Below are positions 1-52,810 of a stretch of DNA of 64,000 nt, piece by piece (positions within the stretch are counted from its first letter, which is position 1; the number at the start of each line of letters is the position of its first letter). The notes under the pieces were generated by a model. That model had not been told where the DNA came from and did not search any database. It saw only the letters and a program-made list of their open reading frames with translations. Made by a program: the position numbers and the translations under genes. Location of the stretch: IMG/VR virus record IMGVR_UViG_3300031787_007614, positions 124,001-188,000 of that record. One strand, given 5' to 3'.

Positions 1-218
1 ACAAGCCCCGTAAGTCCAATTGCTACACTTACAAGATTCACAAACATCTGTGGTTTATTTGCAACACGGATGCACCATATCAGAAACAGTATGGTTCCTA
101 TAAAAAATGTAAGGATATTGTAGGGATAGGCCGCGGGCCCGATAGCGTTGAGGCTGTGCCCTGCTACAATAAACACGGCACCTGCCCACTGCAAAATTTC
201 GTTAGTATCTAATTTCAT
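1..218 (-). CDS. Small membrane protein, truncated by window start (not in ORF track)
   Basis: Hand translation MKLDTNEILQWAGAVFIVAGHSLNAIGPAAYPYNILTFFIGTILFLIW... is open to base 1 and hydrophobic. ATG is 6 nt after TATAAT. Confidence 0.75.
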   Translation of the reverse strand, partial: MKLDTNEILQWAGAVFIVAGHSLNAIGPAAYPYNILTFFIGTILFLIWCIRVANKPQMFVNLVSVAIGLTGL

Positions 219-775: not shown

Positions 776-876
776 TTGCTAAATTTTTTAATCGTGTGTT
801 TGAACTGTTGGTAGCCTGGGGCGACACTGTGCATGAGTACAGAATGAGCCGCGCCAGTCGTACCTGGTACTATTAA
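772..876 (+). CDS. Small hypothetical protein (34 aa, [34 protein letters not shown])
   Basis: ATGA overlap with the upstream stop; hand translation. Confidence 0.55.
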
Positions 877-1460
877 TCTCGTTTGATTAATATTTTATCA
901 GCAAGGCCATATTCAACTGCTTCGCCAGCAGTCATGAAATTGTCACGTTCCATATCAGCTTTGAGTTGTTTGTGGGGTTTGCCAGTGTGTTTGACATAGA
1001 TATCAGTCAACACAGTTTTCCAACGCAATAGTTCTCGAGCTTGAATTTCCACGTCTGTGGCCTGACCCGATGCGCCGCCCAGGGGTTGATGGATCATGTG
1101 GCGTGCATTGGGCAGGATGTAGCGATTGCCCTTGTCGCCAGCAGCGGCCAACAACGAGCCCATGCTGGCAGCCTGCCCCATCACAATAGTGTGAATTTTG
1201 GGCTTGATAAAGTTCATGGTATCGTAAATGGCCATACCTGCTGTGACTGATCCGCCGGGTGAGTTGATGTACAAGCTGATGGCTTTGTCGGGGTTGTCAC
1301 TTTCCAAAAACAATAACTGCGCACAGATCAAGCTGGCTGTGTGTTGGGTGACTTCTCCGTCCAGCATGATCACACGATCTTTGAGCAAGCGGCTGTAAAG
1401 GTCGTAACTGCGTTCGCCTCGGGAAGTGTTTTCGATAACAATTGGCACTAGATTTGACAT
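873..1460 (-). CDS. clpP: ATP-dependent Clp protease proteolytic subunit
   Basis: [24 protein letters not shown] (Ser), MIHQP (His), MERDNF (Asp); AGGAG SD before MSNLVP. Confidence 0.97.
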
Positions 1461-1511
1461 GGGGTCTCCTGGTTGATTGCATAAGTATAGCATTATTCTC
1501 GGAAGAAAACA

Positions 1512-3092
1512 ATGCGTGATCTACTCAATTTACTCGACAACATACTGACTGAAGAAGTCAACGCTCAATTTGCCCCTGAACTTGAAGGCATGAAAGACGT
1601 GATTTCTAGAAGAATCAAGGATCTTCCAGACGACCCTGCTACTGCAAAAGCTCTTAAAGAAATTGAAGATCTGCTGTCGCATATTTCACATGGTGGAAGA
1701 ATGGGATCAATCAGTAAAGAAATTGAAGCTGTGCAAGATCAAGCTGTGCAAGATGCTAAAAAAGTTCTGGCAAGACTAGCAATGAACATCATGGAAGAAG
1801 TTGGTGCCACGCCGTTGCAACGTGCTGATTTTTTCAATACCTGGAAAAGCGATCGGTTGGTCAACACCCAGGCCCTGCTGAGCAATGAAAAAGTTGACTT
1901 TCCTGTGGTATTCACTGGTTATACTGAAAATCCAGTCACAAAAGAATTTGTTGACGAAGTTATGATGATCCAGGAATTAGGCATGGGACGAGGCGAATTT
2001 GGATTGAACGTACTGAGCAAAAGTATTACTGTGGCAGGCAAAAGTTCAAAACAAGACAATGACGAGGACAGCGGATCTAAAAAGGGTGACTTACAAATCA
2101 AGTCAGGTGGTAAAGTTTACCAAGTAGAATTAAAAACTGAAATGGGTGGTGCTGCCAGATTTGGAGATCAAGAAGTTAGGCCAGCAGAAGGATTTGAAGC
2201 ATCCGCAGTGACGTTGAATAATTTTGTGAAATCTCACAAGGCATACAAAAATCTCAAACGCAAATTGTCCGGCAGCGGCATGAATTTGAACCAGGCCATA
2301 GACTTTAACAAACTTCTTTCTCCAGCAGACAGTGATAAATTCCTGGCACTGACTCAACGGTGTATATCTCTCATATTTGGCAATATCAAAGGCAGTAGAA
2401 AAGAGTATGCCACAAGATTGAAAAAAAATATAAATGGCATTATGACAGCTATCGAAACTGGCGACAGCGGATCGGCTGCACAACAATGGAGTCAGGCCAG
2501 TTTCAATTATTACATGAGCAAAAAAGAAGACGACGGCGTGCTCTATCTTAACTTGAACAGCAAAGTATTCATATACTACAATGATGCAGAACAATTACTG
2601 GCACAAGGACTGAGATTCCACGCCAGTACTCCATACATTAGTGCCACAAAAGATCCTGTTAGATCAGTGTATCCACAGATTGGAGTTCAACAAACATCAT
2701 TTGGTGGTGACGCGGCTCGACAAGGATTGACACAGTTGTCCAAAGGAAAAAATCCTATGGCAGCTTCAACATTCAATTCTGCGTTGACTGATTGGGTCAT
2801 GACATTGGCAGGCAGACGTGGCATCAACAATCAAAAGTTAATAGCGCAAATTGCCAAGTCAACCTTGAACATGATAGCTAACAAAACACCAAAAGAGCAA
2901 ATTATTCCTGCACTAGAACGCCAATTTCCACAGTTGGTTCCAAGAGGGGCCGTGCAGCCAGTGGCACCTGCTGTGGCACCTGCTGTGGCGCCTGTTGGTA
3001 GACTCACAGGTCCGGGCGTGAAAACAGCTAGAAACCCAGCACAACCTCAGGTGACTGCTGAAGTGTTGGGCAGAGAACGCAGACGTAATTAA
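1512..3092 (+). CDS. 526-aa protein with a possible PD-(D/E)XK nuclease-like motif
   Basis: GDLQI...VELK motif preceded by GMGRGEFG; Pro/Ala/Val low-complexity tail. Confidence 0.55.
2961..2996 (+). repeat. 12-bp tandem repeat x3 (VAPA linker)
   Basis: gtggcacctgct gtggcacctgct gtggcgcctgtt. Confidence 0.85.
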
Positions 3093-3664
3093 CGAGTCAC
3101 TTGGCTGATGTGATCACAGATACCCAGCCGCAGGGCATCATCCGCACCCAAATAAACGTCATGCGGTGGCAACAGATGTTGCTTGATTTGGTCTTCGCTT
3201 AGACCTGTACAATCTATATAATGCTGTACCATGCGTTTTTGTGTGAGCTCAAACTCTTTAATTGTGGCCAATAGTTCATGATGTTTGCCATCACTGCCCC
3301 AGGCATACTGGTGACTCATGATTGACGTATTAGGAGTGAGTGTTCTGCGTCCTGGTGTTCCTGCCAAAAAGATCAACAATCCGGCACTGGCAATTTGCCC
3401 CAGCCCCACAGCTTTGATTGGAATGACCGAACTGCGCATGACATCAATCAAGGCAAATGCTGAACTCATGTCTCCACCTTCTGAGCAAATCATTAGCAAG
3501 AGTTCTTTGCGTTTTTTCTTGGCCACAAAGTTCTCGTGCAGGATCCATTCAATTATGGGTTTGATGTTATCATCATCAACCTCGCCCATAAAAACATACA
3601 TTCCAGCGTCGGCCAAGGCTTGGGTGTGAGTCTGCTCAATTTGTAGGGAGTTATCTGTGGTCAT
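3089..3664 (-). CDS. clpP: Divergent second ClpP-family protease
   Basis: CSEGGD, GLGQIASAG (Ser), MSHQY (His), HDVYL (Asp) are colinear with ClpP. Confidence 0.85.
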   Translation of the reverse strand: MTTDNSLQIEQTHTQALADAGMYVFMGEVDDDNIKPIIEWILHENFVAKKKRKELLLMICSEGGDMSSAFALIDVMRSSVIPIKAVGLGQIASAGLLIFLAGTPGRRTLTPNTSIMSHQYAWGSDGKHHELLATIKEFELTQKRMVQHYIDCTGLSEDQIKQHLLPPHDVYLGADDALRLGICDHISQVTR

Positions 3665-3678
3665 AATTTGAATGTAGG

Positions 3679-3700
3679 AAAAGGCAGCCGAAGCTGCCTT
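3679..3700 (-). terminator. Intrinsic terminator AAGGCAGC-TTCG-GCTGCCTT followed by TT
   Basis: 8-bp perfect stem, UUCG loop, short U tract, 14 nt after the lipoprotein stop. Confidence 0.8.
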
Positions 3701-3708
3701 TATTTATA
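3701..3708 (-). promoter_or_regulatory. T4-like late promoter TATAAATA abutting the hairpin
   Basis: Exact T4 late consensus upstream of the second clpP. Confidence 0.7.
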
Positions 3709-3714
3709 CGCCGT

Positions 3715-4554
3715 TTATTGCAGGGTAATTTGTCCAACCACTGCATTAGGCTTGGCCAATGCTTCTGCTCGTTTGCGCTTGTATTCCTCATTGTCCACGT
3801 CCAGTAATTTTAGTTCACCTTGTGTGGTGCTTACTACACTAGGAGCCGGTTTTGGTTCCGTTTCCACTTTTACAGGTTCAATTCGACTTTGCGGAACCAA
3901 GCTACGTTCAAGATTGGCATCAGTATCTTGCTGAGTTTTGCGCTCAACTGCTTCGTTACGATCCATGTTTTGTTCAGCGGCCCGACTGCGGATTTCAAGT
4001 TCGCGTGTCAACTGAGTTTGTTCTCGTCGAGTTTGAATTGTGTTTGCGGCTCCAAGGGGCAGACGCAACAACACATAGACCTTGTAGTACTGCCCGTCAT
4101 GGGTGGCTTGACTGTCTACCCGTTGAGCTCCACTCAACTCACCATTGGCATTCTTGCGAGTGACCTGCTGGAAGTTTTCAACCAGAGCTTGGCCACGATC
4201 AGATCTAAAGTTATTGGTCTGTGTGGTAATACGAGCATACATCTGCTCAATCAACTTGCGTTCAGCTGCCATACGAGCTTTGTCGTAGGCCATTTGTTCG
4301 TCTGTGCTGACTGCTGTACCAGCCGCAAAGGTCATCTCTGCGGTATCTTCAGGCAGGCGTACAAACCATTCTGGCGCACGGGGTATCACACGCTGAGGCT
4401 GGGCTGGCATGGCATACGGATGTACCGGGGCTTGATACACTTGTGGTGCTGGTTGTGCTACCACCTGTGGCACGGGCACTTCGGCTTTTTGAGCACTGGC
4501 ACAAGCCACAAGACCGGCACTGATTGCCACAACAGAAAGTTTAACGAGTTTCAT
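3715..4554 (-). CDS. Lipoprotein (LPP20-like) with coiled-coil C-terminus
   Basis: Signal peptide and lipobox GLVAC; AAAGG SD before MKLVKL. Confidence 0.75.
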   Translation of the reverse strand: MKLVKLSVVAISAGLVACASAQKAEVPVPQVVAQPAPQVYQAPVHPYAMPAQPQRVIPRAPEWFVRLPEDTAEMTFAAGTAVSTDEQMAYDKARMAAERKLIEQMYARITTQTNNFRSDRGQALVENFQQVTRKNANGELSGAQRVDSQATHDGQYYKVYVLLRLPLGAANTIQTRREQTQLTRELEIRSRAAEQNMDRNEAVERKTQQDTDANLERSLVPQSRIEPVKVETEPKPAPSVVSTTQGELKLLDVDNEEYKRKRAEALAKPNAVVGQITLQ

Positions 4555-4586
4555 ACACACCTTTCAGGTTAGTTAACGGATAAAGC

Positions 4587-4615
4587 ATTGTAGCAGATTG
4601 ATTAAAATTTGTCAA
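4587..4615 (-). promoter_or_regulatory. sigma70-type promoter TTGACA-17-TACAAT
   Basis: -35 at 4615-4610, -10 at 4592-4587. Confidence 0.8.
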
Positions 4616-5162
4616 CCACTATCCACTTTGCATCTTGCATTTGGCAAATGATTCCTTGTACCACAGCAATGTCTTGTGCTTGGAATTCAGTATCCAAAAA
4701 CCAACGGCACCGAGCGCCGTTGTGCCAAAACTCTCTATTGCGGTCTGGATGCGGTCTAAACTGGCTTACCAGGCCCACTGTGCCCACTGTGGTCTTTCGA
4801 ATTGTTTGGTGTTCGGGTCTATCCGAACACACCACAACGGATTCTGTAGCTACAGACGTTTGTCCGCTTCGACTTTGCACTTCTGCTTCTGCTCGAGTTA
4901 GTGCAATATTGCATGCTGACTGTTCGGATTGAGAAAGATCAAAAGACTGGTCACCGTGAGCAGTAAGCCACTGGTTTCCAATCCTTGCACGGAAACTCAC
5001 AATGCATCGTTTCTTTCCATTAATTTCTGGAGTTACAGTCTGTGTCAACGCAGATCTCTCAAGTATCTGCGCACGACCATTAGTGGCTGTTTTGCTTTGT
5101 AAAACGCATTCACCGGCTGCTACTGCCGCAGGTAACATGAGAGCAATGACTAGTTTTTTCAT
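4602..5162 (-). CDS. Secreted Cys-rich hypothetical protein
   Basis: Signal-like MKKLVIALMLPAAVAAG; ATGA overlap with the upstream gene; six Cys in the mature region. Confidence 0.75.
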   Translation of the reverse strand: MKKLVIALMLPAAVAAGECVLQSKTATNGRAQILERSALTQTVTPEINGKKRCIVSFRARIGNQWLTAHGDQSFDLSQSEQSACNIALTRAEAEVQSRSGQTSVATESVVVCSDRPEHQTIRKTTVGTVGLVSQFRPHPDRNREFWHNGARCRWFLDTEFQAQDIAVVQGIICQMQDAKWIVVDKF

Positions 5163-5515
5163 GAGCAGTGTTTTAAATGTTGCAGATTCCAATTTATCTG
5201 TTTGTTTATGGCACCAGATGCAATTTCTTGTCTGCGTTGATAGCCGTCTGGGTCAGTTATTTGTGTCCAAAAATTGCCAATGTTTCCTAGTCCAGCAAAC
5301 AGCATCTCATCTTCTGATTGCCTCATGCTTTGCAACATCGCAATCTGTTGTTCTTTGATACGACAGTTGGGCTGGAAAAAATTTAGATCACGCTCGGACA
5401 TGGGCATGCGACTGACATTGGTAACGGCGCACCCACTACACAGGCTGACAATTGTAACGCAGAGTCCAAAGACGGTGGCGAATTTGCGATCGCTGACGTG
5501 CATAATCTTGCTCAC
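5159..5515 (-). CDS. Putative lipoprotein
   Basis: Hydrophobic stretch ending LCSGC. Confidence 0.7.
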   Translation of the reverse strand: MSKIMHVSDRKFATVFGLCVTIVSLCSGCAVTNVSRMPMSERDLNFFQPNCRIKEQQIAMLQSMRQSEDEMLFAGLGNIGNFWTQITDPDGYQRRQEIASGAINKQINWNLQHLKHCS

Positions 5516-5687
5516 TTTGAAATGATTGACGAGGAATTAAATCTTGACTTTCGATCCACCTGGCAATGGCAGACCTATTGGCACAGTCATCTGGCATGAT
5601 GGCCACATCTATTGGCATGGGTCTAGGTGCTGATGCACACCCTATCAATGTGATCAATAGCAAAGGTGCCAGATGTTTAGTGTTCAT
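5436..5687 (-). CDS. Putative lipoprotein
   Basis: LLLITLIGC lipobox. Confidence 0.7.
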   Translation of the reverse strand: MNTKHLAPLLLITLIGCASAPRPMPIDVAIMPDDCANRSAIARWIESQDLIPRQSFQSEQDYARQRSQIRHRLWTLRYNCQPV

Positions 5688-5829
5688 CGCGCTGACGGTG
5701 TTTGATTTTGCGAGTGTACGCCACCCGCAACCTTTCTACTTTGAGTCTGAAAGGGGTATCGCGTGAGTACAACTCCACCGCACGACGGCGCTGGCGAGGT
5801 ATTTCGAGCTTGAAACTTAGTGTCTTCAT
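5677..5829 (-). CDS. 50-aa basic peptide resembling alternative ribosome-rescue factor ArfA (not in ORF track)
   Basis: MKTLSFKLEIPRQRRRAVELYSRDTPFRLKVERLRVAYTRKIKHRQRDEH; FRLKVE...AYTRKIKH vs E. coli ArfA FRQRVE...SYMRKGKH; leaderless behind its own promoter. Confidence 0.6.
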   Translation of the reverse strand: MKTLSFKLEIPRQRRRAVELYSRDTPFRLKVERLRVAYTRKIKHRQRDEH

Positions 5830-5835
5830 GATGTA

Positions 5836-5864
5836 ATTATAGCAGATTGGCTTTTATTGGTCAA
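5836..5864 (-). promoter_or_regulatory. sigma70-type promoter TTGACC-17-TATAAT
   Basis: The -35 contains the TGA stop of the upstream gene; ATG 6 nt after the -10. Confidence 0.85.
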
Positions 5865-6187
5865 TCGGCACGTGAGCTCATGTATGCATTGATACCAAAA
5901 CTGCGCAGAACGTCAGCATAGGCTTGGGCGCCTGCTTCTTTGATGTCCATGCTCTGGGTGCCTGAACCACCGGGGTTCCACAGATCCAGGCCACCGTGGT
6001 AGCTCTTGCGGAAGCCCACACTTTTGAGCGCACGACCCAACTTGGTCGAAGCCTTTTCGCTCACATGCACCCAGGCAAAACCACAGTAACCAGGTTCACC
6101 GTGTTGGGCACGGAAGTCTGCTTCGGCACGTTCTGCGGCGGCGGTAGCAGTGTTATGGACAGATTCAATATTGTCTAGTGCAAGCAT
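5861..6187 (-). CDS. Hypothetical early protein (108 aa)
   Basis: AAGGAG SD before MLALDN; the ORF-track start abuts the -10 and is unlikely. Confidence 0.8.
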   Translation of the reverse strand: MLALDNIESVHNTATAAAERAEADFRAQHGEPGYCGFAWVHVSEKASTKLGRALKSVGFRKSYHGGLDLWNPGGSGTQSMDIKEAGAQAYADVLRSFGINAYMSSRAD

Positions 6188-6217
6188 TTTGGGCTCCTTT
6201 TGCGTTAACATGTCCAT

Positions 6218-6246
6218 AGTATAGCAGATCGAGAATTTCCGGTCAA
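6218..6246 (-). promoter_or_regulatory. sigma70-type promoter TTGACC-17-TATACT
   Basis: -35 at 6246-6241, -10 at 6223-6218. Confidence 0.8.
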
Positions 6247-7056: not shown

Positions 7057-7497
7057 ATGAAAACAACAATAACAACATTAGCCTTGATGCTGGTTACAGC
7101 TGGAGCCACCGCCACTGAACTAGTACATCAATTTAATTCGCCGTCGTTCAGTGGTATCGGTTACAGTAGTCACGTCCTTACAATCGAACAACTAGAGGCA
7201 ACACGCCGTCAGAAACTACGAGAAGAAGAAGCAAGCAGGATAGCCAAAGCCGAGCTTGCTGCCAAACAAACCAATATAGCTAAATTTCTAGTCAACGTAG
7301 AAAGTCGCATCTACGCTCAGTTGAGCAAACAGTTGGCAGACTCGCTGTTCAGCGGTGGGGGCACCACAGGCAGCATGGATTTCCAAGGCACCAACATCAG
7401 TTGGGTCAAAACTTCTACTGATGTAACCATGACCATTCTAGAAAGCAATGGCAATCGCACAGAGATCACTGTGCCACTAGCGAGTTTTGCATTTTGA
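7057..7497 (+). CDS. csgF: Curli assembly protein CsgF-like
   Basis: Signal peptide, then ELVHQFNSPSFSG (CsgF N-terminal F..PSF.G motif). Confidence 0.85.
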   Translation: MKTTITTLALMLVTAGATATELVHQFNSPSFSGIGYSSHVLTIEQLEATRRQKLREEEASRIAKAELAAKQTNIAKFLVNVESRIYAQLSKQLADSLFSGGGTTGSMDFQGTNISWVKTSTDVTMTILESNGNRTEITVPLASFAF

Positions 7498-8321
7498 TGA
7501 AAGCACTGTTTTTATCATTGCTGTTGGCTGTGTCTGGGTGTGCCAGTTTGGATCAAACTCAATTTGATGTACAGCCACCTCAATTGGTGCCACGACAAAA
7601 TTTGTTGGCTGTGTTGCCCGAGTTAGATGGTCCAAGAATACCTGTTGCTGTATATGGATTCATGGACAAGACTGGTCAGAAAAAAAACAACGACAAGCTG
7701 GCGTTATTTTCTACAGCGGTAACACAAGGTGCTGAAGTGTTTTTGATCAAGGCCTTGCAAGACACCCCAAACTGGTTCACAGTGGTTGAACGTGTAGGCC
7801 TGGACAACTTGATCAAAGAGCGTCAACTGATTCGCAATCAACGTGAAGTGTACGAAGGCAAAGATGCCAAGCCGCTCAAGCCTTTGTTGGTAGCTGGACT
7901 CATGATTGAAGGTGGCATCATTGGTTATGACACCAACATAACGTCTGGTGGTCGAGGAGCCAGAGTGCTAGGCATTGGTGCCAGTACTCAATATCGTGTG
8001 GACGAGATTGTGATATCCATGCGAGTGATTTCAGTCAACACTGGAGAAGTGTTGCTGAATACGGCTGTGAGCAAGACGGTGTTTAGCACAGCTCACAATC
8101 AAGGTGTTCTCAAATTTGTTGACCTTGGCACAACCAGTGTTGAACTTGAGAACGGGGCTGCTATTAACGAGCCCACCACATACGCTGTTCGAATAGCCAT
8201 CGAGCAAGCGGTGTACGAAATGATCCAAGAAGGAGCAAAACGGAAACTTTGGTCATACAAAAAGGGCACAAGCCCAAGGAGTGCGGATGAGGATAGTAAC
8301 TTGCCCACAAAACAAAAATGA
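7494..8321 (+). CDS. csgG: Curli secretion pore lipoprotein CsgG
   Basis: Lipobox VSGC; AVYGFMDKTGQ, FSTAVTQGA, WFTVVERVGLDNLIKERQLIR, EGGIIGYD. Confidence 0.95.
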   Translation: MMKALFLSLLLAVSGCASLDQTQFDVQPPQLVPRQNLLAVLPELDGPRIPVAVYGFMDKTGQKKNNDKLALFSTAVTQGAEVFLIKALQDTPNWFTVVERVGLDNLIKERQLIRNQREVYEGKDAKPLKPLLVAGLMIEGGIIGYDTNITSGGRGARVLGIGASTQYRVDEIVISMRVISVNTGEVLLNTAVSKTVFSTAHNQGVLKFVDLGTTSVELENGAAINEPTTYAVRIAIEQAVYEMIQEGAKRKLWSYKKGTSPRSADEDSNLPTKQK

Positions 8322-8944
8322 AAATAACAAGATCTCTCAAAGGGACAATATTTGCATTGAGCATGATGGCTTTATCGCATGTTCAAGCTTCAAATGAAAT
8401 TTACATAGAGCAAGTTGGTGATAATGCCACAGTGACTTTAAAACAAGCAGGCAGCAACAATACCATTGGCTCTGCCCTAGCACCGGCCTTTATTGGTGGC
8501 GGCCAAAACGTAGTTTACGTTGAACAATCTGGCAGTAGCAATCAACTGGCCATGTTGGTCAACGGCGCTGGCACTAATGTGACGTTAACAATCACAGGCG
8601 ACAGCAACCAACAGACCATCACATGCGGAACCAGCATCAGCGCCAGCTGTAGCGGATCTGCAATCACGCATACCATAACAGGTGACAACAATGATGTGCA
8701 AAGTATCCTAGGTACCAATGGTGGAGCGCATACCAGTAACATCACAGTGCTAGGTGACTACAACCATGTGACTCATAGCAGTTCAGGATCAGGCGCCAAC
8801 TCAGCCACAATCAATGTTACTGGGTCAGGCTCAGGTGCTACCCCAAATGCAATCACTGTATCACAGAGTGGTATGAATACTCAAAGTGCAACCGTCAATG
8901 CTTCGGGCAATAACATTAATATCAGTATTATTCAGTCTGACTAA
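8318..8944 (+). CDS. Curlin-repeat (CsgA/CsgB-like) secreted protein
   Basis: Signal peptide; repeated I/V-x-Q-x-G-x-x-N units (EQVGDN, KQAGSNN, EQSGSSN, ITGDSN, ITGDNN, SQSGMN). Confidence 0.75.
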   Translation: MKITRSLKGTIFALSMMALSHVQASNEIYIEQVGDNATVTLKQAGSNNTIGSALAPAFIGGGQNVVYVEQSGSSNQLAMLVNGAGTNVTLTITGDSNQQTITCGTSISASCSGSAITHTITGDNNDVQSILGTNGGAHTSNITVLGDYNHVTHSSSGSGANSATINVTGSGSGATPNAITVSQSGMNTQSATVNASGNNINISIIQSD

Positions 8945-11520: not shown

Positions 11521-13569
11521 TTACTTTTCATGGGCAACAAACTCACCGTTCCAGTTGTCGCCTAGGTCCTGTTGCTTCATGAACGCACAACGTTCAATCC
11601 ACATTTTATAGTACTTGTCCATTTGCCCACCAAACTTGCCGTGCAATTCTTCACACAAGATAACAGCCGCATCAAACTGTTTTTCTTTGTATAAGGCATG
11701 CATTTTGTTGTGCGTAGCACGTTCTTTAGTATAATCCTCACCACGAGTGCGTAGCACGGTGTAGATCAAGTCTGCTACTGTTTTGCCTTTGGGTTGTAAG
11801 TTATCTAATAGCAAGTAGAAGAAGTCATCTCGAGTTCTGTTGTATGTCTCAGCACCAACAATGGCCAACACACCATAAGCCTTACAACGTGCTTCTAGTC
11901 GTGCGGCTGTTGACACCATGTCACCCAAGATGTCATAACTGTGTCGTTCTGTTGAACCCATCTCACCAATAAAGCCGACGCCTGTGTTACAGCCCCAACC
12001 CATTGCAGCTGGTGGTAAGCCCTGAGCTTCCATCTCTTTAGTGTAAGCATCTACAGCATCCAACATTTCTAATCCTACTTGAACAATAGTTCTAGCATGG
12101 TTAGGATCTTCAATTGGAGCACCGTGTATGTGCATACTCGCATCACCCACATACTTTATGACCATGCCTTTGTTGTCTAGTATAGGGCGGCTGATGCTGT
12201 CCATGTAGCCGTTCATGTACCGGCCAAGTCCAGCAACATCATCGCCGTAGTGTTCCCCAATTGGTGTAAAACCACGTAAGTCACTGAACATGACACTTAC
12301 GTCTTTACGCACGCCACGCTTGATCAAGTCTGGATCTTTTTGCAGTAGCTCTACAACTTCCTTGGAACAGTAGCCTGCAAATTGTTTTTTGATTGCTTGT
12401 TTTTGGAGGAACTCTGAGACAAACTTGACTCCGTAGGCGTGTAGCCCGACAAGGACAATGCCCGCGACTGGGAGGGTAACGTCAAATAACCAAAGGTAAT
12501 TGACAAAACTAAAGTAACTGCCATACGCAAGTACAGCGCATATTCCAACCAACGAGATAAGACCAACATACACCCACCTTGTAAGAATTAATAATAACAC
12601 GCCTGCTGCCAAGATAACAAGTATTTCAACTCCATCAGCGTAGTCTGGACGCACAATATTGGTGCCTGCTGCCACAGTTTCTAGTACACTGGCTTGCAAG
12701 TAGTGCGGATAGACTTCTCCTCTTGCAGTTGCGACGGGGTTGTTGAGCCCGCGAGCTGTGAGTCCGACAATGACAATTCCACCTTGGAAGTCCTCTGGCA
12801 AATCAGCCAGGGAGTATTCTTGCGGTTGGGATGACCAATCCACCCAAACTCTACCGTAACTGTCTGTTGGAATTTTTCCAAACTGTGGAATTCTAACTGC
12901 TTCAACGCTTCCGTCATTGACTCGGACCTGGAAGCTGGGATCTCCGGCAAGGACTCTAAGCGTTTCAAGACTGATGGAGGGATAGACTTGTTCTCCAACT
13001 GTGACGACTTGGGGGACTCGGCGTACAACGCCGTCGATTTCAGGCAAAGTGTTAACAATGCCAATGCCGCTTGCTGTTTCATTTAATGACCTCACGTTGG
13101 GTTGAATACTTTGATACGCTATGCCCGGCAAACCAGTGCCTATTACAGACACACCAGGTCTGTAAGGTGCGTACTTGGACACAGTGTTTTCGTTGGTGGC
13201 CATGTGTGGCAACACTACTAAACTCTCTTTGAGTTGCCGAGACAGTGCAGAGTCTTGCCCAAAACGATCCACATCGGGCATGAATATGTTAAACACAATC
13301 ACACCTGCATTGCGATCTTCTAACTGACGAATAATGTCAGCATACTGATTTCTGGGAAAAGGAAACTGCCCACGTTGAGCAATAGCACGGTCGTCAATGT
13401 TGACCACATGAATTTGCTCACTTGTTGTAACAGCACGATCAGTGATCAGCATGTCAAAGTAACGTAGTCTTATACTTTCTACAAAGCTAGGATCAGCAAT
13501 TCTTATACTTAAAATAAGTGCCAATGTAATTAGAGCAGTCCATGGACTTAGTAGAATTTTTTTCAACAT
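11521..13569 (-). CDS. CHASE2-domain class III adenylate/guanylate cyclase
   Basis: N-terminal TM, CHASE2 (VVNID, QFPFPR, DGVVRRVP), three TMs, cyclase FSDLRGFT / KYVGDA / GDMVSTAARLE. Confidence 0.93.
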   Translation of the reverse strand: MLKKILLSPWTALITLALILSIRIADPSFVESIRLRYFDMLITDRAVTTSEQIHVVNIDDRAIAQRGQFPFPRNQYADIIRQLEDRNAGVIVFNIFMPDVDRFGQDSALSRQLKESLVVLPHMATNENTVSKYAPYRPGVSVIGTGLPGIAYQSIQPNVRSLNETASGIGIVNTLPEIDGVVRRVPQVVTVGEQVYPSISLETLRVLAGDPSFQVRVNDGSVEAVRIPQFGKIPTDSYGRVWVDWSSQPQEYSLADLPEDFQGGIVIVGLTARGLNNPVATARGEVYPHYLQASVLETVAAGTNIVRPDYADGVEILVILAAGVLLLILTRWVYVGLISLVGICAVLAYGSYFSFVNYLWLFDVTLPVAGIVLVGLHAYGVKFVSEFLQKQAIKKQFAGYCSKEVVELLQKDPDLIKRGVRKDVSVMFSDLRGFTPIGEHYGDDVAGLGRYMNGYMDSISRPILDNKGMVIKYVGDASMHIHGAPIEDPNHARTIVQVGLEMLDAVDAYTKEMEAQGLPPAAMGWGCNTGVGFIGEMGSTERHSYDILGDMVSTAARLEARCKAYGVLAIVGAETYNRTRDDFFYLLLDNLQPKGKTVADLIYTVLRTRGEDYTKERATHNKMHALYKEKQFDAAVILCEELHGKFGGQMDKYYKMWIERCAFMKQQDLGDNWNGEFVAHEK

Positions 13570-13572
13570 CAA

Positions 13573-27790: not shown

Positions 27791-28215
27791 TAGCGATACT
27801 CCCGATCTAGTTTAACACTGGTCAATCCAGCAACCATTTGAAATTTGTCCCAGGCATCTTTCACTGCCGGGCGAGATTCAAGTTCACTGTCCGGCAATAC
27901 TGTTTCCAACCAGTATTCTGATCGGCGGCTTGGATGTGTGCCAAACTTGCGTGGCTGGTGTAGTCGACCAGTTTCCCAAAGTTCAATGCTAACACTGCGG
28001 AACTTGTCTTCATCTTCTTTACTGTTGAAATCATAGGCACTCCATTCTGCTCGGCTGCCGCCACCATAGCAGTATCCCGCCCAGATGCCTGCCCACTGTT
28101 CGTCATCTCTGGGATCAAAATCTGTACGAGTAATCAGCACCAACACATCGTCCATGTTCACACTACCTTCCACAATGTCTCGAACGCAACGGCTGTAACT
28201 GAGTCCAATTTTCAT
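27790..28215 (-). CDS. Hypothetical protein
   Basis: ORF track; coupled operon. Confidence 0.8.
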   Translation of the reverse strand: MKIGLSYSRCVRDIVEGSVNMDDVLVLITRTDFDPRDDEQWAGIWAGYCYGGGSRAEWSAYDFNSKEDEDKFRSVSIELWETGRLHQPRKFGTHPSRRSEYWLETVLPDSELESRPAVKDAWDKFQMVAGLTSVKLDREYR

Positions 28216-29585
28216 ACTTTTTCACCTGCTTCAAAGTCACGGAATCTCAAGAACCGGGGGAATCGGAGACTGTATGTTCCGTCTTGGTTTTGGGTGACTG
28301 CGTCCGCTTGGACTTCAACCAAGTGACCAAGTAGCTGATCCCTACTGGCCCAATACTCATCGCGAAGAGTATCACTAAACCCACTACCAACATTAACATG
28401 AATTCTACGGTCATTATCATCTCCTTCACAGATTATAGCACCCAACCGGTTTTCGTTCCTACCAGTTCCTTCTTCAAAACCCACAATGTTCAAATCAACT
28501 GTGATGGTGGGTTTCCATTTCATCCACGAGTCCGAACGTTTGCATTGGTATGGTGCGTCCAGGCTCTTGATCATGATGCCTTCAAAGCCACCTTCCACAG
28601 CAGCTTCCGCATAACGTTGCATGATGTCATGTCCTTCGGCTGTGTCCAGGTTCACATCCAAGCCTGGCATGATGCGCAGACACGTAGTCTCTTCCAATCC
28701 AGCGCGGGCTGACTCTAGCCATTCCAGACGTTTGTACTGCCCTGCATTCCAGTGCCCTTCTTGAAAAGCTTCAAGTGGGATGATATCAAAGATGTGATAC
28801 ACCATGCCGGTGGTTTCGGCGTTTGATTTGCGATGTGCTTGGCGCATGAGTTGCTGGAAACTTTCGCCCACAATCTCACCATCCAACACATAATGGCCAC
28901 CGGTACCACGTCCATATTGGAAGTGCTTGCGAGCATCTTCAATGGCATCGGCAACCTGCGGAAAGTTTTCAAATTCTTTGCCATTGCGACTGTATAGTGT
29001 GACTGTGGATCCACTAACCACTGCCAACACACGCACACCATCCAGTTTGCATTCCAGGCGCTTGATGCCTTTCATTTTCTTGGGATGATCTGTTGAGTCT
29101 TGTGCCAGCTGGCACGAGAAAATTGGTATCTTGTATTCGGTCTTGCCCACAACCTTGTTGATGGTCTTTTCTGAAATGCCGCATCGAAGGTCTTTGATCA
29201 ACACACGGCGGGCTAACATGTTCCATTCTTCCGAGTCAAACTGCTGGCTCATTTGTTCAACTGCTTCTCTAGCACGATTGCCTGTGATGTACCTAGTGCG
29301 TAGAGCTTCTAGCATGGCCCAGAACTGTGTCCAAGGATTGGCACGACCAGTCAGTCCCTCAGTCTCAGGCACCTGGCGGATGCCAAACACATAGAACGGA
29401 TTGTAGGCTTGGTAGCAATTGAACAAAAAACACTGTGCATCGGCACTGCCAAGCCGAGCAGCCATGAGAGCCTTTTCAATCACTTTTTCTTTGTGAATGC
29501 GACTGTCAGAGCTTTCTAGGTCTCGGATCCATCCTGCGGCCATTATGGCATCAAACCTTGAGTAGCTGTAATCGGTTTCATTCAT
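28212..29585 (-). CDS. lig: ATP-dependent DNA ligase
   Basis: KLDGVR (motif I), VLDGEI, FDII, EGIMIK, WMKWK, OB fold SLRFPRF. Confidence 0.95.
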   Translation of the reverse strand: MNETDYSYSRFDAIMAAGWIRDLESSDSRIHKEKVIEKALMAARLGSADAQCFLFNCYQAYNPFYVFGIRQVPETEGLTGRANPWTQFWAMLEALRTRYITGNRAREAVEQMSQQFDSEEWNMLARRVLIKDLRCGISEKTINKVVGKTEYKIPIFSCQLAQDSTDHPKKMKGIKRLECKLDGVRVLAVVSGSTVTLYSRNGKEFENFPQVADAIEDARKHFQYGRGTGGHYVLDGEIVGESFQQLMRQAHRKSNAETTGMVYHIFDIIPLEAFQEGHWNAGQYKRLEWLESARAGLEETTCLRIMPGLDVNLDTAEGHDIMQRYAEAAVEGGFEGIMIKSLDAPYQCKRSDSWMKWKPTITVDLNIVGFEEGTGRNENRLGAIICEGDDNDRRIHVNVGSGFSDTLRDEYWASRDQLLGHLVEVQADAVTQNQDGTYSLRFPRFLRFRDFEAGEKV

Positions 29586-38763: not shown

Positions 38764-41076
38764 TTAAAGTTTACACGCTTCACAATCTTCTTCAAGATCA
38801 AAATCAATAATCTCAAGAGGTTCTTCCACTTTCATTTTGCTACCAGCTTTGTTGATAAGACTGTAGTAGAATGTTTTGATACCCCAATGATGTGCTTGCA
38901 TTAGATTGCGAGCAATCAGTGTGGTAGGTACTTTTCTATCAGGCCAGTGTGCTGGGTTATAAAACGTATTGGTCGAAATTGACTGGTCAATATAAGCAGC
39001 CAAAACCGCTGCTGTTTTTAGATATCCGTCACAGTCTTTTTGTGCCCACATCAGTTGATATTTGTTTTTCAACTTGTGATACTCGGGTACAACTTGTGTC
39101 AATGATCCAGCCTTGCTTTCTTTAACTGAGATCAGGCTCATGGGCATTTCAATGCCGTTGGTTGAGTTAATTACAACTGAACTTGATTCCACAGGCGCCA
39201 CTGCCATAAGTGTGGCATTGCGTACCCCGTGAGCTTTCATCTGTTCACGCAAGGGTTCCCAGTCTAGTTCTGGTGCAAAATTCGCAAGTTCGTTAACTCC
39301 GTTAGCTCGTCGTTCCCACGGAAACACACCACGACCATACCAGGTGCGGTCCGAATCTTTGCAACGGCCACGTTCTTTAGCAAGCTCAACTGTGGCTTCT
39401 GTGAGATAATAGGCTTGGTGCTCCATCCAAGATTTGACTTCGGCCAAAGCATCTGTATCACCGTATAGGAGGCCGCGCTTGGCATGCCAGTAAGCCAAGT
39501 TAGTAATACCGATGCCAAGCGGCTGGATTTCGTCATTTGATAATTTTGATTGGATCGATAGGAAGTCTTGGTAGTCAAGGATATTACACAAGGATCTCTG
39601 CAGAATTCTACAAGCTCTGCGCATGTCTTCAGGATTCCGGAATGCACCCCAGTTAATACTTCCAAGCGTACAGAGCGCGATTCGCCCATCAGCGTCATCC
39701 AGGCGCTTAAACGGTTTAGTTGGTAAGAGAATTTCACAGCAAAGGTTACTCTGATAAATGGTATGATACTCAGGATCAAATGGTCCTTGGTTCATCACAT
39801 TGTCAATAAACACTAGATAGATACGACCAGTGTCTGTTCGTTCTTTAAGTATGCCTGATTTGAACACCTCTTCAGCAGACATAGTTTTTGTCCGGAGGTC
39901 AGATCTAGCTTCATATTTGACATAAAGATCTTCAAAAAGGTTAATGTCTTTGTAGAATGCCTCGTAAAGTTCCGGTACTTCGTTAGGGTCAAAAAACGTG
40001 ATGTTTTGTTTGTGTTTAAATCTACGCCAGAAAAAAGCAGAAAGCACCACCCCGTAGTCCATGTGTCGGACACGGGTTTCTTCGGTTCCTTGATTGTTCT
40101 TGAGCACAATAAGATCATCGAATTGATGATGCCAGATGGGATAAAAAACAGTGGCACTTGCATTTCGAATACCTCCTTGTGAACATGACCGTAAATCACC
40201 AAACCATTTTTTCAGGAATGGTATCATGCCTGTGTGCATGATCTCACCACCACGAATGGGTGAGCCCAATGGACGTAGACGTCCTATCTCCAGGCCAATA
40301 CCAGCACGTTTGCTGGCATACTTGGCCATCATTTCTCCTGAAGCAAAGATGCTATCAAGATCATCATCTGAACGAATAAGCACACAACTACTAAATTGCT
40401 TAGTTGGAGTACCAAGGCCGGCCAGAACAGGAGTTGCAAGAGTAAAGAGCCCATCGCTAGCCGCGTTGTAGTATTCTTTAATATAACGCATCCTAGCTGT
40501 GTTAGGTTCTTCTTTGTGAAACACTGTGGCAGCGGCCACCATGTATCTAACTTGCGGAGTTTCATAAATTTCCTTTGTGGAGCGATTGCGTACCAAATAT
40601 TTTTCAATCAATTGCTCAATGGCTGCATATGAATATTGTTCATCCTTAGCATGATCAATTATGTCGTTCATGCGGTTCCAGTCATCCTCTGAGTACCATT
40701 CCAACAGTTCAGGAGTGTACAAGCCGGTGGCTACATTGCGTTTCACAATCTCATACAAGTGTGGAGGCTGATAAGAACCATAGACATCTTTGCGCAACAT
40801 AGAGAGCCGTTGTTTGCCTGCCACATGTTGATAGTTGGTATGGCCCACATCAGGGTTTTGCTCTACATCAATGAGATCTACTATGGCTCGCAGTGTAATG
40901 CCATCAATTTCTTTGGTAGTAATACCATCATAAAAGTGTAGCTGTGTGCGTATCTCTATCATGCTTTGACTTACGTCTGCTATGCCTGCGCATACTTTGG
41001 CAATTTGCGTTTGCCACTTTTCCAAAGCCAATGGCTCTCGGGTGCCATCTCTTTTAAGAACTGTAATTATTTTCAT
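38764..41076 (-). CDS. nrdA: Ribonucleotide reductase class Ia alpha subunit
   Basis: ATP cone KRDG, SSCVL, SNLCCEI, C-terminal CEAC. Confidence 0.97.
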   Translation of the reverse strand: MKIITVLKRDGTREPLALEKWQTQIAKVCAGIADVSQSMIEIRTQLHFYDGITTKEIDGITLRAIVDLIDVEQNPDVGHTNYQHVAGKQRLSMLRKDVYGSYQPPHLYEIVKRNVATGLYTPELLEWYSEDDWNRMNDIIDHAKDEQYSYAAIEQLIEKYLVRNRSTKEIYETPQVRYMVAAATVFHKEEPNTARMRYIKEYYNAASDGLFTLATPVLAGLGTPTKQFSSCVLIRSDDDLDSIFASGEMMAKYASKRAGIGLEIGRLRPLGSPIRGGEIMHTGMIPFLKKWFGDLRSCSQGGIRNASATVFYPIWHHQFDDLIVLKNNQGTEETRVRHMDYGVVLSAFFWRRFKHKQNITFFDPNEVPELYEAFYKDINLFEDLYVKYEARSDLRTKTMSAEEVFKSGILKERTDTGRIYLVFIDNVMNQGPFDPEYHTIYQSNLCCEILLPTKPFKRLDDADGRIALCTLGSINWGAFRNPEDMRRACRILQRSLCNILDYQDFLSIQSKLSNDEIQPLGIGITNLAYWHAKRGLLYGDTDALAEVKSWMEHQAYYLTEATVELAKERGRCKDSDRTWYGRGVFPWERRANGVNELANFAPELDWEPLREQMKAHGVRNATLMAVAPVESSSVVINSTNGIEMPMSLISVKESKAGSLTQVVPEYHKLKNKYQLMWAQKDCDGYLKTAAVLAAYIDQSISTNTFYNPAHWPDRKVPTTLIARNLMQAHHWGIKTFYYSLINKAGSKMKVEEPLEIIDFDLEEDCEACKL

Positions 41077-41079
41077 TTT

Positions 41080-41508
41080 TTAACCAATTTTTTGTTGTAT
41101 TTGTTGCTGACTAACACGGTGCCGAGGGTTTTCTGGTCCTGGAGTGATATTTACGATTGTGTCCTTGTCCCAATTCAGTATATATTTCTTTTGAGGCGCA
41201 TGGACTAAATTGTCACTACCATGATCGGCTAACCAGCATTTTTGCAAGTCTTCACGATCAATTATTGTTATAGTATACAGGATTCCTAGCCCACGAGCAA
41301 GCCCACAGAACAAATTGTCATCTAATAGTTGCCAGGGATCAGGCCAATTGTCACGATCGTCCCAGTGTAAATGATAAGGAATCCAAGGAGTAGAAAACCA
41401 CCATTGATTAATGGTGGTCAAGGCTGATTCAACATCAGCAGTGGCAGCTTGATTTCTCAGTGCGTTCCAAGACTCAAGCCTATCAGCAAAAGTTCTAGGC
41501 CACATCAA
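41080..41508 (-). CDS. Hypothetical protein (possible transglutaminase-like)
   Basis: WPDPWQLL..FCGLARGLG. Confidence 0.65.
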   Translation of the reverse strand: MMWPRTFADRLESWNALRNQAATADVESALTTINQWWFSTPWIPYHLHWDDRDNWPDPWQLLDDNLFCGLARGLGILYTITIIDREDLQKCWLADHGSDNLVHAPQKKYILNWDKDTIVNITPGPENPRHRVSQQQIQQKIG

Positions 41509-43277
41509 ATGCCAAAGTTTGCTACAGAATACCTAATTGAAGCATTTGCACCAGTACTGGTACAAGTGTAACCCACTGAAAGTTCGGTGCCGCTGTCTGC
41601 TGGTGTAAGTGTTACACCAGTTGAGCCATTTTCTGTAAAGTTGTCAACATAACTGAAACCAGTGGTGGTAGCAGCTTGACCACCTGTTACTGTGATTGTG
41701 CCTCTGCGTCTGGTGTCAGATCTAGTGATCACATAATCAAAACTAAATGAAGTGATAGCAGTTTTATCAATCACCACAAGATTGCCGCTGCCATTGTCTA
41801 CCAGTGTGTCTGATATTCCTGCTGATCGTTTCAGCGTTCCAAGATCCAGGCTCATTCCAACGTTAGTGGTGGTTGCTTGCGATTGATAAAACACCATGTC
41901 TCGAGTGTTCTGACTCATTGCAATGGAGTTTGTGGTAGCAAGACTGATTCTAGGATAGGTGCCGCTTTGACTGTCATTGCGCTGAAACAAGTCGCCAACA
42001 GAAATATTGTTGTTGGCATCAATGCTGATGATAGGCGCTGCTGGTAGTGAAGCGCCATTGAAGTGATTGGCCACATCATAAAACACATTGTAACCAGTAG
42101 CATTCAAACTGCATTCTTGAATGATGATACCTTCGCCGTAGATATTATCAAACACATTATGCAACACCTTGAATCCGCTTGGCCCACCATCTACTGGTGT
42201 GGCACTGCCCAACACCACACCCTGATATAGCACATCAAACCATCCGTTGCTGACAGTTACTCCGGCAGTTTGATGGTCAGTGTTAATACCATAAGTCATG
42301 CCAGTGAATTTACATTTGTCCATGGTAATTTCTGTGCAAGGCAATGCAGTAGTTGAACTGAACAAAACACCGCTTACGTCTTCCACAGCATCTTGCAACT
42401 GCACTGTGGTAAGATTGCTGGCAAAGGTCACATTGTCCATACTGACTTTTTGAGCCTTTTCAATCAAACACACATTATGACTGCCTGACTCGGTGGTCTG
42501 GAATGACATGCTGGACACTTCAATGTTTTGTGGAGGGCTTGCGCCACCCACTCCAATGTTGACTCCAGTTTGTTGTTGACTATCGGCAGTTCTAACAACC
42601 AGTTCTGGCAGTGTGGTAGATTCCCAGTAACTTGCGTTGGATAACAAAATACCAGTGGCAGGCACTGCGGCAATACTACGGTAGTAACTGCCTGAACTTT
42701 TGACCAACACACCATCGGCATAGGCAGTGTTGGCAGCCCAAGTTTGCACAGTAAAATAAATAATACTGGAATCAGCGCCTTCGCCGTACAGTTTGGCCCA
42801 GGGCGGAATCAGTATGGTGTCTGTGACAATGTACGTGCCAGCTGGGAAAAACAAACTTCGGCGTATTTGTGTGTTGTTTTGCACACAGAACAATTGGAAC
42901 AGTGCTCGGTTGATAGCATCAGTGTCATCAGTGCTGCCGTCGCCTGTGGCGCCAAAGTCCGTGACAACAGCGTAACTGTCCAGTCTGCTTTGTATGCTTT
43001 GGCTGACAGGATCGCCAGACGTAGCGCCTGTTTGCACTGTATAGCCAGCGGCTGCGCCTTGATAGGTATACGCAGTGGTAAAACTGAGAATGTCTGAGAA
43101 CTCTGTAAGAACTTCGGTATTTCCCACTATTGGAGCACCGTCAGCAATTGAGCCGTTACCAATGTAGAGTTTGCGCTGATCAATTGCCCAGCCAAATTCG
43201 GCTCCAGCTAAGGGTTGAGGCAGGTCTGTCTCGAGTCCGGTTCGTTGGGTTATTCTAGATACTTGTACTATTGCCAC
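41505..43277 (-). CDS. Tail fibre/tailspike with pectin-lyase-like beta-helix
   Basis: VTDFGATGDGSTDDTDAI, FFPAGTY; GTG start with AAGGA SD. Confidence 0.85.
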   Translation of the reverse strand: MAIVQVSRITQRTGLETDLPQPLAGAEFGWAIDQRKLYIGNGSIADGAPIVGNTEVLTEFSDILSFTTAYTYQGAAAGYTVQTGATSGDPVSQSIQSRLDSYAVVTDFGATGDGSTDDTDAINRALFQLFCVQNNTQIRRSLFFPAGTYIVTDTILIPPWAKLYGEGADSSIIYFTVQTWAANTAYADGVLVKSSGSYYRSIAAVPATGILLSNASYWESTTLPELVVRTADSQQQTGVNIGVGGASPPQNIEVSSMSFQTTESGSHNVCLIEKAQKVSMDNVTFASNLTTVQLQDAVEDVSGVLFSSTTALPCTEITMDKCKFTGMTYGINTDHQTAGVTVSNGWFDVLYQGVVLGSATPVDGGPSGFKVLHNVFDNIYGEGIIIQECSLNATGYNVFYDVANHFNGASLPAAPIISIDANNNISVGDLFQRNDSQSGTYPRISLATTNSIAMSQNTRDMVFYQSQATTTNVGMSLDLGTLKRSAGISDTLVDNGSGNLVVIDKTAITSFSFDYVITRSDTRRRGTITVTGGQAATTTGFSYVDNFTENGSTGVTLTPADSGTELSVGYTCTSTGANASIRYSVANFGI

Positions 43278-51880: not shown

Positions 51881-52810
51881 ATGACCAGTCAAATCAACCC
51901 TAACAACATCGACGGAAACTATCCAGTAGCCGGCGTTCCCAACAACACACAAGGGTTTCGGGACAATTTCACAAACACTAGCACTAATTTTCAATATGCA
52001 GCAGACGAAATAACTGCACTGCAAACCAACGCAGTTTTTAAATCTGCACTAACTGGTGCTACACTTGACAACAACATGAATGACAATCTCATTTATGCTG
52101 TAAAATTGCAAGATGTCAGCTATACCTATGTGCCAATTACCACAACTTCTGGCTCAGTCAGCGTGGACTATTCTGCAGGACAATATCAATACGTCAGCAC
52201 AACTGGCAGTATCAGTTTAAACTTTAGCAATTTTCCCACCAGCGGCAGTGCTGGTATAGTACAGCTGGCCATCAACATCACCAATACAGCTTACACTGTT
52301 ACATTGCCGGCTGCTGTGACTTTGGGCATTGTAGGCATTCAAGGCATTAGTTCAAATGTGATCACATTTGCCGCCACAGGAACTTATCAGTTTCAATTTA
52401 CCACTACAGACGGCGGCACCACCGTAACTGTTTACGATCTAAATCGCCCATTGCTGGGCAGCGCAGAATCTGCTGTGGGATACAGCACCGGTACTGGCGG
52501 CACTGTCACACAGGCCACCAGTAAATCAACTGGTGTAACACTCAACAAACGCTGTGGACAAATCACCATGAACAATGCTGCGTTGTCGGCAGCGGCTGAA
52601 GTGAGTTTTACTTTTACCAACAGCACTATTGCAGCCACTGATGTGGTTGTTACTGCTATCAGTTCAGGTGCCACAGCTGGCGCCTACAACACTCACGTTG
52701 ATGCAATTGCCGCAGGCAGTTGTAGAATTAGTATAACCAATTTTTCAGCTGGTCCCCTGTCTGAAGCCATAGTACTAAACTTTGTTGTGATCAAAGCGGT
52801 AAACGCTTAA
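51881..52810 (+). CDS. Putative tail/fibre-associated structural protein
   Basis: TAAATA and AAGGA SD before MTSQIN; Thr/Ser-rich; C-terminal GGTVTQATSKSTGVTLN domain. Confidence 0.7.
   Translation: MTSQINPNNIDGNYPVAGVPNNTQGFRDNFTNTSTNFQYAADEITALQTNAVFKSALTGATLDNNMNDNLIYAVKLQDVSYTYVPITTTSGSVSVDYSAGQYQYVSTTGSISLNFSNFPTSGSAGIVQLAINITNTAYTVTLPAAVTLGIVGIQGISSNVITFAATGTYQFQFTTTDGGTTVTVYDLNRPLLGSAESAVGYSTGTGGTVTQATSKSTGVTLNKRCGQITMNNAALSAAAEVSFTFTNSTIAATDVVVTAISSGATAGAYNTHVDAIAAGSCRISITNFSAGPLSEAIVLNFVVIKAVNA

Follow-up and report, generated by a model that had tools for sequence, protein, structure and literature searches.

Does a 50-amino-acid (aa) open reading frame (ORF) in the genome of a jumbo phage encode a ribosome-rescue peptide of the ArfA type? 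To our knowledge, all characterized ArfA and BrfA factors are chromosomal back-ups that are made only when trans-translation fails, from their own mRNAs that lack stop codons. In bacteria, arfA has a narrow distribution, occurring mainly in Gammaproteobacteria and in few Betaproteobacteria. The ORF considered here lies in a 64,000-nucleotide (nt) stretch of DNA (the window, to which all coordinates refer unless stated otherwise) that corresponds to positions 124001-188000 of the 364,404-bp IMG/VR virus record IMGVR_UViG_3300031787_007614. The record is that of a jumbo phage with 44.5% G+C and direct terminal repeats, and its completeness estimate is complete. A preliminary description of the window had proposed that the ORF encodes a highly basic, ArfA-like peptide and lies under its own consensus, presumably early, promoter. 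The features concerned are the following.

5677 to 5829, minus strand: ArfA-like basic ORF of 50 aa, from ATG start to TAA stop (stop included in the coordinates)
5830 to 5835, minus strand: gap between the -10 element and the ATG, six bases (TACATC)
5836 to 5864, minus strand: sigma-70-type promoter with -35 TTGACC (5864-5859), a 17-nt spacer and -10 TATAAT (5841-5836)

The 50-aa ORF is a conserved protein-coding gene

The ORF is present at the place described for it, and its product is indeed highly basic, with 16 lysine plus arginine residues versus 6 aspartate plus glutamate residues and a pI of 11.4. Residues 1-16 comprise hydrophobic residues in alternation, Pro11 and then R14-R16. The gene occurs as a single copy in the phage genome, where a family HMM recovers it with an E value of 1e-22 and the next best frame with one of 0.71. 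The preliminary description had tied its proposal to conservation of the ORF, and a scan of IMG/VR showed that 32 viral contigs encode a relative of 49-51 aa. Three of these loci are identical and the remainder are 58-76% identical, and the reading frame is open for 49-51 codons in all 32. Twenty columns are invariant among the relatives, including the block R14-F27 as well as E32, Y38, R40, K43 and H44. Across 26 distinct nucleotide sequences, the median dN/dS is ~0.15 (median pN 0.21 versus pS 0.68), and synonymous change is abundant within the invariant core; Ser22, for instance, is encoded by TCA, TCT, AGC and AGT, which span both the TCN and the AGY codons. Because dN/dS is this low and several codons are used per invariant residue, we conclude that the 50-aa ORF codes for a protein on which purifying selection acts. 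The reading that it is not a gene is ruled out by dN/dS and by the conservation across loci. Two plus-strand ORFs also lie over the same site (5566-5766 and 5702-5836); the pattern of change by codon position fits the minus-strand frame.

The RNA fold of the ORF region is unremarkable relative to shuffled sequences (z = -0.62); this comparison revealed no hairpin of the RNase III type in the region, and no terminator-like site was found within the ORF on its own strand. An AF2 model of the peptide (pLDDT 82) is extended throughout apart from a single short helix (residues 18-21), a shape that would be compatible with a ribosome-bound peptide. When this model was compared with the PDB by Foldseek, nothing matched, which is unsurprising for a peptide that has no fold. 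Four metatranscriptome RNA runs give only short contigs of relatives (90-99% alike), one of which spans the promoter, and DNA carry-over is possible for all of these contigs.

The promoter and a probably leaderless transcript

The promoter that the preliminary description had assigned to the ORF lies directly upstream, matches the sigma-70 consensus at 11 of 12 positions, is the best-scoring site between positions 3400 and 7100, and has a spacer that ends in TGC, giving an extended -10 element (TGn). It is also conserved in relatives: the -35 and -10 elements and the 6-nt spacing to the ATG are all kept in 13 aligned loci. In a second clade the promoter is of the same type but is followed by a leader of ~30 nt with GGAG, and in four related loci the gene sits behind another ORF instead. 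Because only six bases separate the -10 element from the ATG of the 50-aa ORF, with no Shine-Dalgarno sequence between the two, the transcript is predicted to start at or next to the ATG and is probably leaderless.

This arrangement recurs elsewhere in the phage genome. Of 48 matches to TTGACN-16..18-TATA[AC]T, 47 lie on the minus strand and a single one on the plus strand; most copies share a longer 29-nt consensus, TTGACCAATAAT.CCCAAT.TGCTATAAT, and precede genes. Sixteen of the 48 sites have, 5-8 nt after the -10 element, a start codon that opens an ORF of at least 40 aa, so that this phage may make many leaderless mRNAs. Copies of the 29-nt consensus within the window include those at 5836-5864 and 6218-6246. 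The second of these precedes a gene for a 118-aa protein (5861-6217, minus strand) that belongs to phrog_22149, a family of unknown function, and that has more than 100 relatives in IMG/VR in addition to relatives in Pelagibacter, Roseobacter and Caulobacter phages.

Relationship of the peptide to ArfA

The preliminary description had aligned the peptide with E. coli ArfA by eye and had called for a comparison with ArfA-family profiles. We built profiles from an alignment of 26 close relatives (A1) and from one of 104 diverse members (A2), and at the family level the comparison is positive. Among 177,635 distinct PDB sequences, the six best matches to the A1 profile are E. coli ArfA (E 0.006-0.05), and three weak non-ArfA rows, none of them a rescue factor, appear as well; the A2 profile matches only six entries up to E = 10, all of them ArfA (E 1.6e-4 to 2.3e-3). 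Alignment of A2 with an ArfA alignment (A4; 22 sequences, enterobacterial only) by hhalign gave a probability of 94.9% and an E value of 4.8e-8 over 39 columns. Conversely, when the 6,473 stop-to-stop frames of the phage genome were searched with an HMM built from ArfA residues 1-55, the 50-aa ORF ranked first (E 0.11, with the next frame at 4.2). The Pfam ArfA model (PF03889; gathering score 25.5 bits) gave no match at E <= 1 or 10 to the window protein or to its 25 close relatives, and it matched 9 of the 104 diverse members below threshold, with a best E value of 3.7e-4. The link to ArfA rests on about 40 columns of lysine- and arginine-rich peptide. The PDB profile searches, hhalign and the reverse HMM, together with the names that the JGI pipeline gives to some homologues, support the ArfA-like interpretation, and by these comparisons the phage family has a sequence relationship to ArfA that covers the A-site and tunnel segments.

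In ArfA, residues His21-Glu30 occupy the A site and residues 31-48 the mRNA tunnel (Demo et al., PMC5378476). HMMER and hhalign both reproduce the by-eye alignment, pairing phage residues A17-D48 with ArfA A15-G49 across a single 3-residue gap inside K34-G37. The peptide had been described as lacking the KGKG segment of ArfA; a gap in the tunnel segment is borne out, but three residues are missing rather than four. Within the paired region, family residues F27, K/R28, K/R30, V/I31, Y38, R40, K43 and H44 correspond to ArfA F25, R26, R28, V29, Y39, R41, K44 and H45. The segment R33-R47, with Y38, R40, K41, K43 and H44, carries a tunnel-type sequence motif in a stretch that is three residues shorter than that of ArfA, and its KH pair is a motif that makes conserved mRNA-tunnel contacts in ArfA and BrfA alike (PMC8012679).

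Conservation is not confined to this basic tail but reaches the RF2-contact segment (L20, F/Y21, P26, F27). ArfA L19, L24 and F25 bind RF2 at Trp319, Val198 and Phe217, and a strand of ArfA extends the domain-2 sheet of RF2 (PMC5378476); the equivalents of this L19/L24/F25 patch in the phage peptide are Y21, P26 and F27, followed by R-x-K-V-E. A prediction of the complex with E. coli RF2 gave a median score of 0.02, which is usable neither for nor against an interaction. The length of the peptide, which had been thought to be about that of active ArfA, also agrees with what is known of ArfA. Its end is the equivalent of ArfA residue ~51, slightly beyond the shortest active length and near the end of the natural 54-55-aa product, which is the active form. 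ArfA truncated at Asn47 is still active (PMC5378476, PMC8012679), and ArfA truncated after Met40 is inactive (PMC5378476).

A family found almost only on phage contigs

The close relatives belong to a much larger family. Exhaustive HMMER searching from the profile of 26 sequences recovered 111 cluster representatives at 50% identity (E <= 0.001), nearly all of them 38-64 aa long, and a word-indexed search recovered 213 clusters at 90% identity, which are mostly metagenomic, with few also in NCBI. Four of these 213 clusters carry the JGI pipeline label 'stalled ribosome alternative rescue factor ArfA'. The family motif is L-[FY]-x2-D-[TS]-P-F-[KR]-x-[KR]-[VI], then Y-x-R-[KR]-x-K-H. Among the 104 diverse members, L20 is conserved in 99, F/Y21 in 100, P26 in 97, F27 in 98 and K/R30 in 102, and in the C-terminal half Y38 is conserved in 94, R40 in 102, K43 in 92 and H44 in 82.

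Parts of the family have been collected before. The Pfam family DUF7230 (PF23876) is matched by 47 of the 104 diverse members and by 13 of the 26 close relatives (best E 4e-8), phrog_6310 and phrog_2701 are each matched by 25-26 of the 104, and phrog_18092 and phrog_20887 are matched by fewer; DUF7230 and all four PHROGs are families of unknown function, and their size (about 42-60 aa) and motif are those of the phage peptides. The window protein itself does not match the DUF7230 model (gathering score 27 bits), whereas its relatives do, and one homologue has a precomputed weak DUF7230 match, so that the window protein would be placed in DUF7230 by transitivity only. No NCBIfam model matched the window protein.

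When one genome for each of 185,579 prokaryotic species was searched, no relative of the close clade was found. Repeating the scan of these genomes with a different sub-alignment gave two loci, each on a short contig of a metagenome-assembled genome (MAG).

2484 to 2606 of its locus: family member in a MAG labeled Oxalobacter sp.
4001 to 4123 of its locus: family member in a MAG labeled Oscillospiraceae

Both loci adjoin phage genes, such as those for a clamp loader (phrog_5846) and helicase-like proteins, and because these neighboring genes are of phage type, the two are probably phage contigs that were binned with bacteria. Some distant members of the family are located within a replication module of T4-like type, with sliding clamp, clamp loader and RegA, and others, on a 187-kb contig, stand beside genes for ribonucleotide reductase, PAAR, ClpX, ribosomal protein S21 and ClpS. 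The family is thus found almost only on phage contigs and is phage-restricted. Searches of isolated phage genomes by megablast with the region and by tblastn with the peptide and two distant members found nothing, a weak result given the low-complexity filter and the short queries. A search of HTVC008M, Melnitz, T4, S-PM2 and P-SSM2 with the family HMM likewise found nothing, its first filter passing no candidates; neither of these negative results is evidence of absence. In the literature searched, we found no paper on DUF7230 or on a phage-encoded ArfA.

Proposed function in the context of the phage genome

The phage carries other genes for translation, all of them outside the window.

Record positions 2639 to 3155, minus strand: permuted two-piece tmRNA (RF01850, 111.5 bits; RF04321, 115 bits)
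Record positions 799 to 4090 and 355769 to 362183, minus strand: two clusters close to the ends of the genome, with 30 tRNA genes in total, for nearly all amino acids

The tmRNA is of the betaproteobacterial two-piece type (Rfam RF01850, gathering score 84), which suggests a betaproteobacterial host; it encodes the tag ANDEKFLMAA (ARAGORN) and sits behind its own promoter match at record position 3141. Since arfA is rare in Betaproteobacteria, being present in 37 of 1,000 surveyed genomes (PMC11633108), the phage may bring a rescue route that its likely host lacks. Neither an RF-1-domain protein nor SmpB is encoded in the phage genome, and both rescue routes would therefore rely on the host, for RF2 and SmpB, respectively.

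On balance, by a narrow majority of our belief, we favor the reading that the ORF encodes a constitutive, phage-borne, ArfA-like rescue factor that would use host RF2. The product would be made directly at about the active length of ArfA, from a strong promoter and a probably leaderless mRNA. Its basic C-terminal half (approximately residues 33-47, with the K43-H44 motif) would thread the mRNA tunnel of a ribosome that has run to the 3' end of a truncated mRNA and stalled there, its middle part (D24-E32) would lie in the A site and pair with the beta-sheet of host RF2, and its N-terminal part would help to open RF2, such that the peptidyl-tRNA is hydrolyzed and the ribosome freed. The peptide would not be subject to the tmRNA-dependent repression by which bacteria hold ArfA in check and, together with the phage tmRNA and the 30 tRNAs, could keep ribosomes available during infection, with benefit expected when mRNA decays or when defense nucleases cut mRNA or tRNA. 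Ribosome binding, the recruitment and activation of RF2 and the benefit to the phage are all what we infer from sequence. The peptide is 58-76% identical among relatives versus ~30-55% for the adjacent lipoproteins, which fits a conserved host target.

Alternatively, the peptide could be a mimic that fills the empty mRNA tunnel, and may also keep RF2 closed in the manner of ArfA A18T, with no release being triggered. Such a mimic could bar the host's tmRNA-SmpB, ArfA or ArfB from stalled ribosomes, or sequester ribosomes or RF2, and could serve as a host-shutoff or regulatory device. Although we consider this unlikely, we keep it in play because of the leucine at the position of ArfA Ala18 and the unrelated N-terminus. 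In ArfA, Ala18 packs against C1914 and Ile11, and A18T ArfA still binds RF2 but release is abolished (PMC5378476); 99 of the 104 family members have leucine at the equivalent position, and the N-terminal 16 residues of the phage peptide are unrelated to the ArfA minidomain. A tunnel segment that is three residues shorter and the strong constitutive expression that is predicted would also suit a non-activating mimic. A pure tunnel plug, however, would need no conserved L20, F/Y21, P26 and F27, and blocked rescue would trap ribosomes that the phage needs; moreover, the tmRNA encoded under its own promoter in the same genome indicates that this phage favors rescue. Because conservation reaches the RF2-contact segment and the phage carries a tmRNA, we favor a role that promotes rescue over one that blocks it.

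Somewhat less likely still is that the peptide, as a small basic protein of the phage, has a different target, for example nucleic acid or some other ribosomal site, and that its likeness to ArfA is convergent or compositional. It is short and rich in lysine and arginine, matches neither the Pfam ArfA model nor any NCBIfam model, and has relatives that Pfam places in a separate family, DUF7230. A composition-driven likeness would not be expected, however, to single out ArfA in the PDB up to E = 10 to the exclusion of every other basic protein, or to yield an hhalign probability of 94.9%, and the non-basic matches (F, V, E, Y, H) occur in the same order and spacing in both proteins. The ArfA-exclusive matches and these ordered non-basic residues make a convergent basic peptide less likely than a relative of ArfA.

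Neighboring genes

The 50-aa ORF heads a same-strand string of genes for predicted lipoprotein or envelope proteins (3715-5687).

5436 to 5687, minus strand: 83-aa predicted lipoprotein gene, whose ATG overlaps the end of the 50-aa ORF by 11 nt
5159 to 5515, minus strand: 118-aa gene
4602 to 5192, minus strand: 196-aa gene with a 17-kDa-antigen-like end
3715 to 4560, minus strand: 281-aa LPP20-like gene

In 24 of the 32 related loci the small ORF is followed in order by the 83-, 118- and 196-aa genes, and the 281-aa gene is retained as well in 17 of these 24; the 83-aa gene lies within about 10 nt of the small ORF in 19 of the 32. Given the 11-nt overlap, the 83-aa gene is probably translationally coupled to the 50-aa ORF. 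That the small ORF is a leader whose translation serves mainly to express the lipoprotein genes, as this overlap and the conserved gene string would allow, is very improbable, since selection acts strongly on its amino acid sequence, which has diverged less than the downstream genes, no lipoprotein gene adjoins it in 8 of the 32 related loci, and distant members lie among the replication genes of T4-like and other large phages. We treat the link between the ORF and the lipoprotein string as clade-specific because the string is absent from these 8 loci and from the surroundings of distant members.

Other genes in the window include a group on the plus strand (7057-8944), divergent from the lipoprotein genes, that encodes CsgF (E 1e-14), CsgG (E 4.5e-52) and a weak curlin-repeat protein; the CsgG is 47% identical to the CsgG of Pelagibacter phage HTVC008M and to those of the Methylophilales Melnitz phages. 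A 683-aa protein (11521-13572, minus strand) has a CHASE2 sensor domain together with a catalytic domain of adenylate/guanylate cyclase, an unusual gene product for a phage genome. Genes at 28212-29585, 38764-41076, 41505-43277 and 52807-54249 (all on the minus strand) encode replication and nucleotide-metabolism proteins (ATP-dependent DNA ligase, the large subunit of class I ribonucleotide reductase and a DnaB-like helicase) and a pectate-lyase-like protein.

Comparison with known ribosome-rescue systems

The sequences of this family are already in databases, as DUF7230, as four PHROGs and under a few automatic 'ArfA' labels. What appears to be new is an ArfA-like peptide that is phage-borne, shortened and, judging from its gene, freed from trans-translation control. 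More speculatively, and with considerable doubt, DUF7230 might represent a large, phage-specific class of constitutive rescue peptides that recruit a release factor, and thus the first protein-based ribosome rescue in viruses. If so, these peptides would free ribosomes during the decay of host mRNA or blunt defenses that cut mRNA or tRNA, viruses would manipulate ribosome rescue by means of a protein as well as a tmRNA, and a function would be assigned to DUF7230 and four PHROG families. The family would also provide more than 100 diverged minimal sequences, including ones with leucine where Ala18 was thought to be required, for the study of how RF2 is opened without a stop codon. As a corollary, bacterial arfA may have its origin in this much more diverse family of phages and have come under control when it gained a non-stop regulatory tail.

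Like the phage protein, ArfA (YhdL; PF03889) is a small basic peptide. Over ArfA residues 15-49 the two have in common an A-[IV]-E start, an aspartate, the equivalents of ArfA F25, R26, R28, V29 and E30 and, further on, those of K33, Y39, R41, K42 and the K44-H45 motif, and the site of action, the A site and the vacant mRNA tunnel, is likely the same. They differ in that ArfA Ala18 is replaced by Leu20, which is invariant in the close clade as well as nearly so in the family at large (99 of 104), Leu19 by tyrosine or phenylalanine, Pro23 by threonine or serine and Leu24 by proline. The 16 N-terminal residues of the phage peptide have no counterpart in the minidomain at the ArfA N-terminus, and three residues of the ArfA KGKGS segment are absent from its tunnel segment. 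Whereas arfA is chromosomal, the gene described here is encoded by a phage. Bacterial arfA is expressed from a non-stop mRNA truncated at a hairpin, and trans-translation destroys what it encodes except where tmRNA is in short supply (PMC8012679). Unlike bacterial arfA, the phage gene has a normal TAA at codon 51, no hairpin and no hydrophobic tail, which would place its product outside trans-translation control.

BrfA of Bacillus subtilis and ArfT of Francisella are likewise small, release factor-dependent rescue peptides whose basic tail occupies the mRNA tunnel, and BrfA has the KH motif in common with ArfA; ArfT, which works with either RF1 or RF2, is regarded as having arisen independently (PMC8012679). 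BrfA, unlike the phage peptide, is made from a non-stop mRNA, and its chain (6SZS according to PMC8012679, and expected in the PDB library) was not matched by the A2 profile up to E = 10. The phage-encoded tmRNA is another phage-carried component of ribosome rescue and is present in the same genome. As an RNA, it tags the nascent chain and needs SmpB, whereas the phage peptide would recruit a release factor and free the ribosome without tagging.
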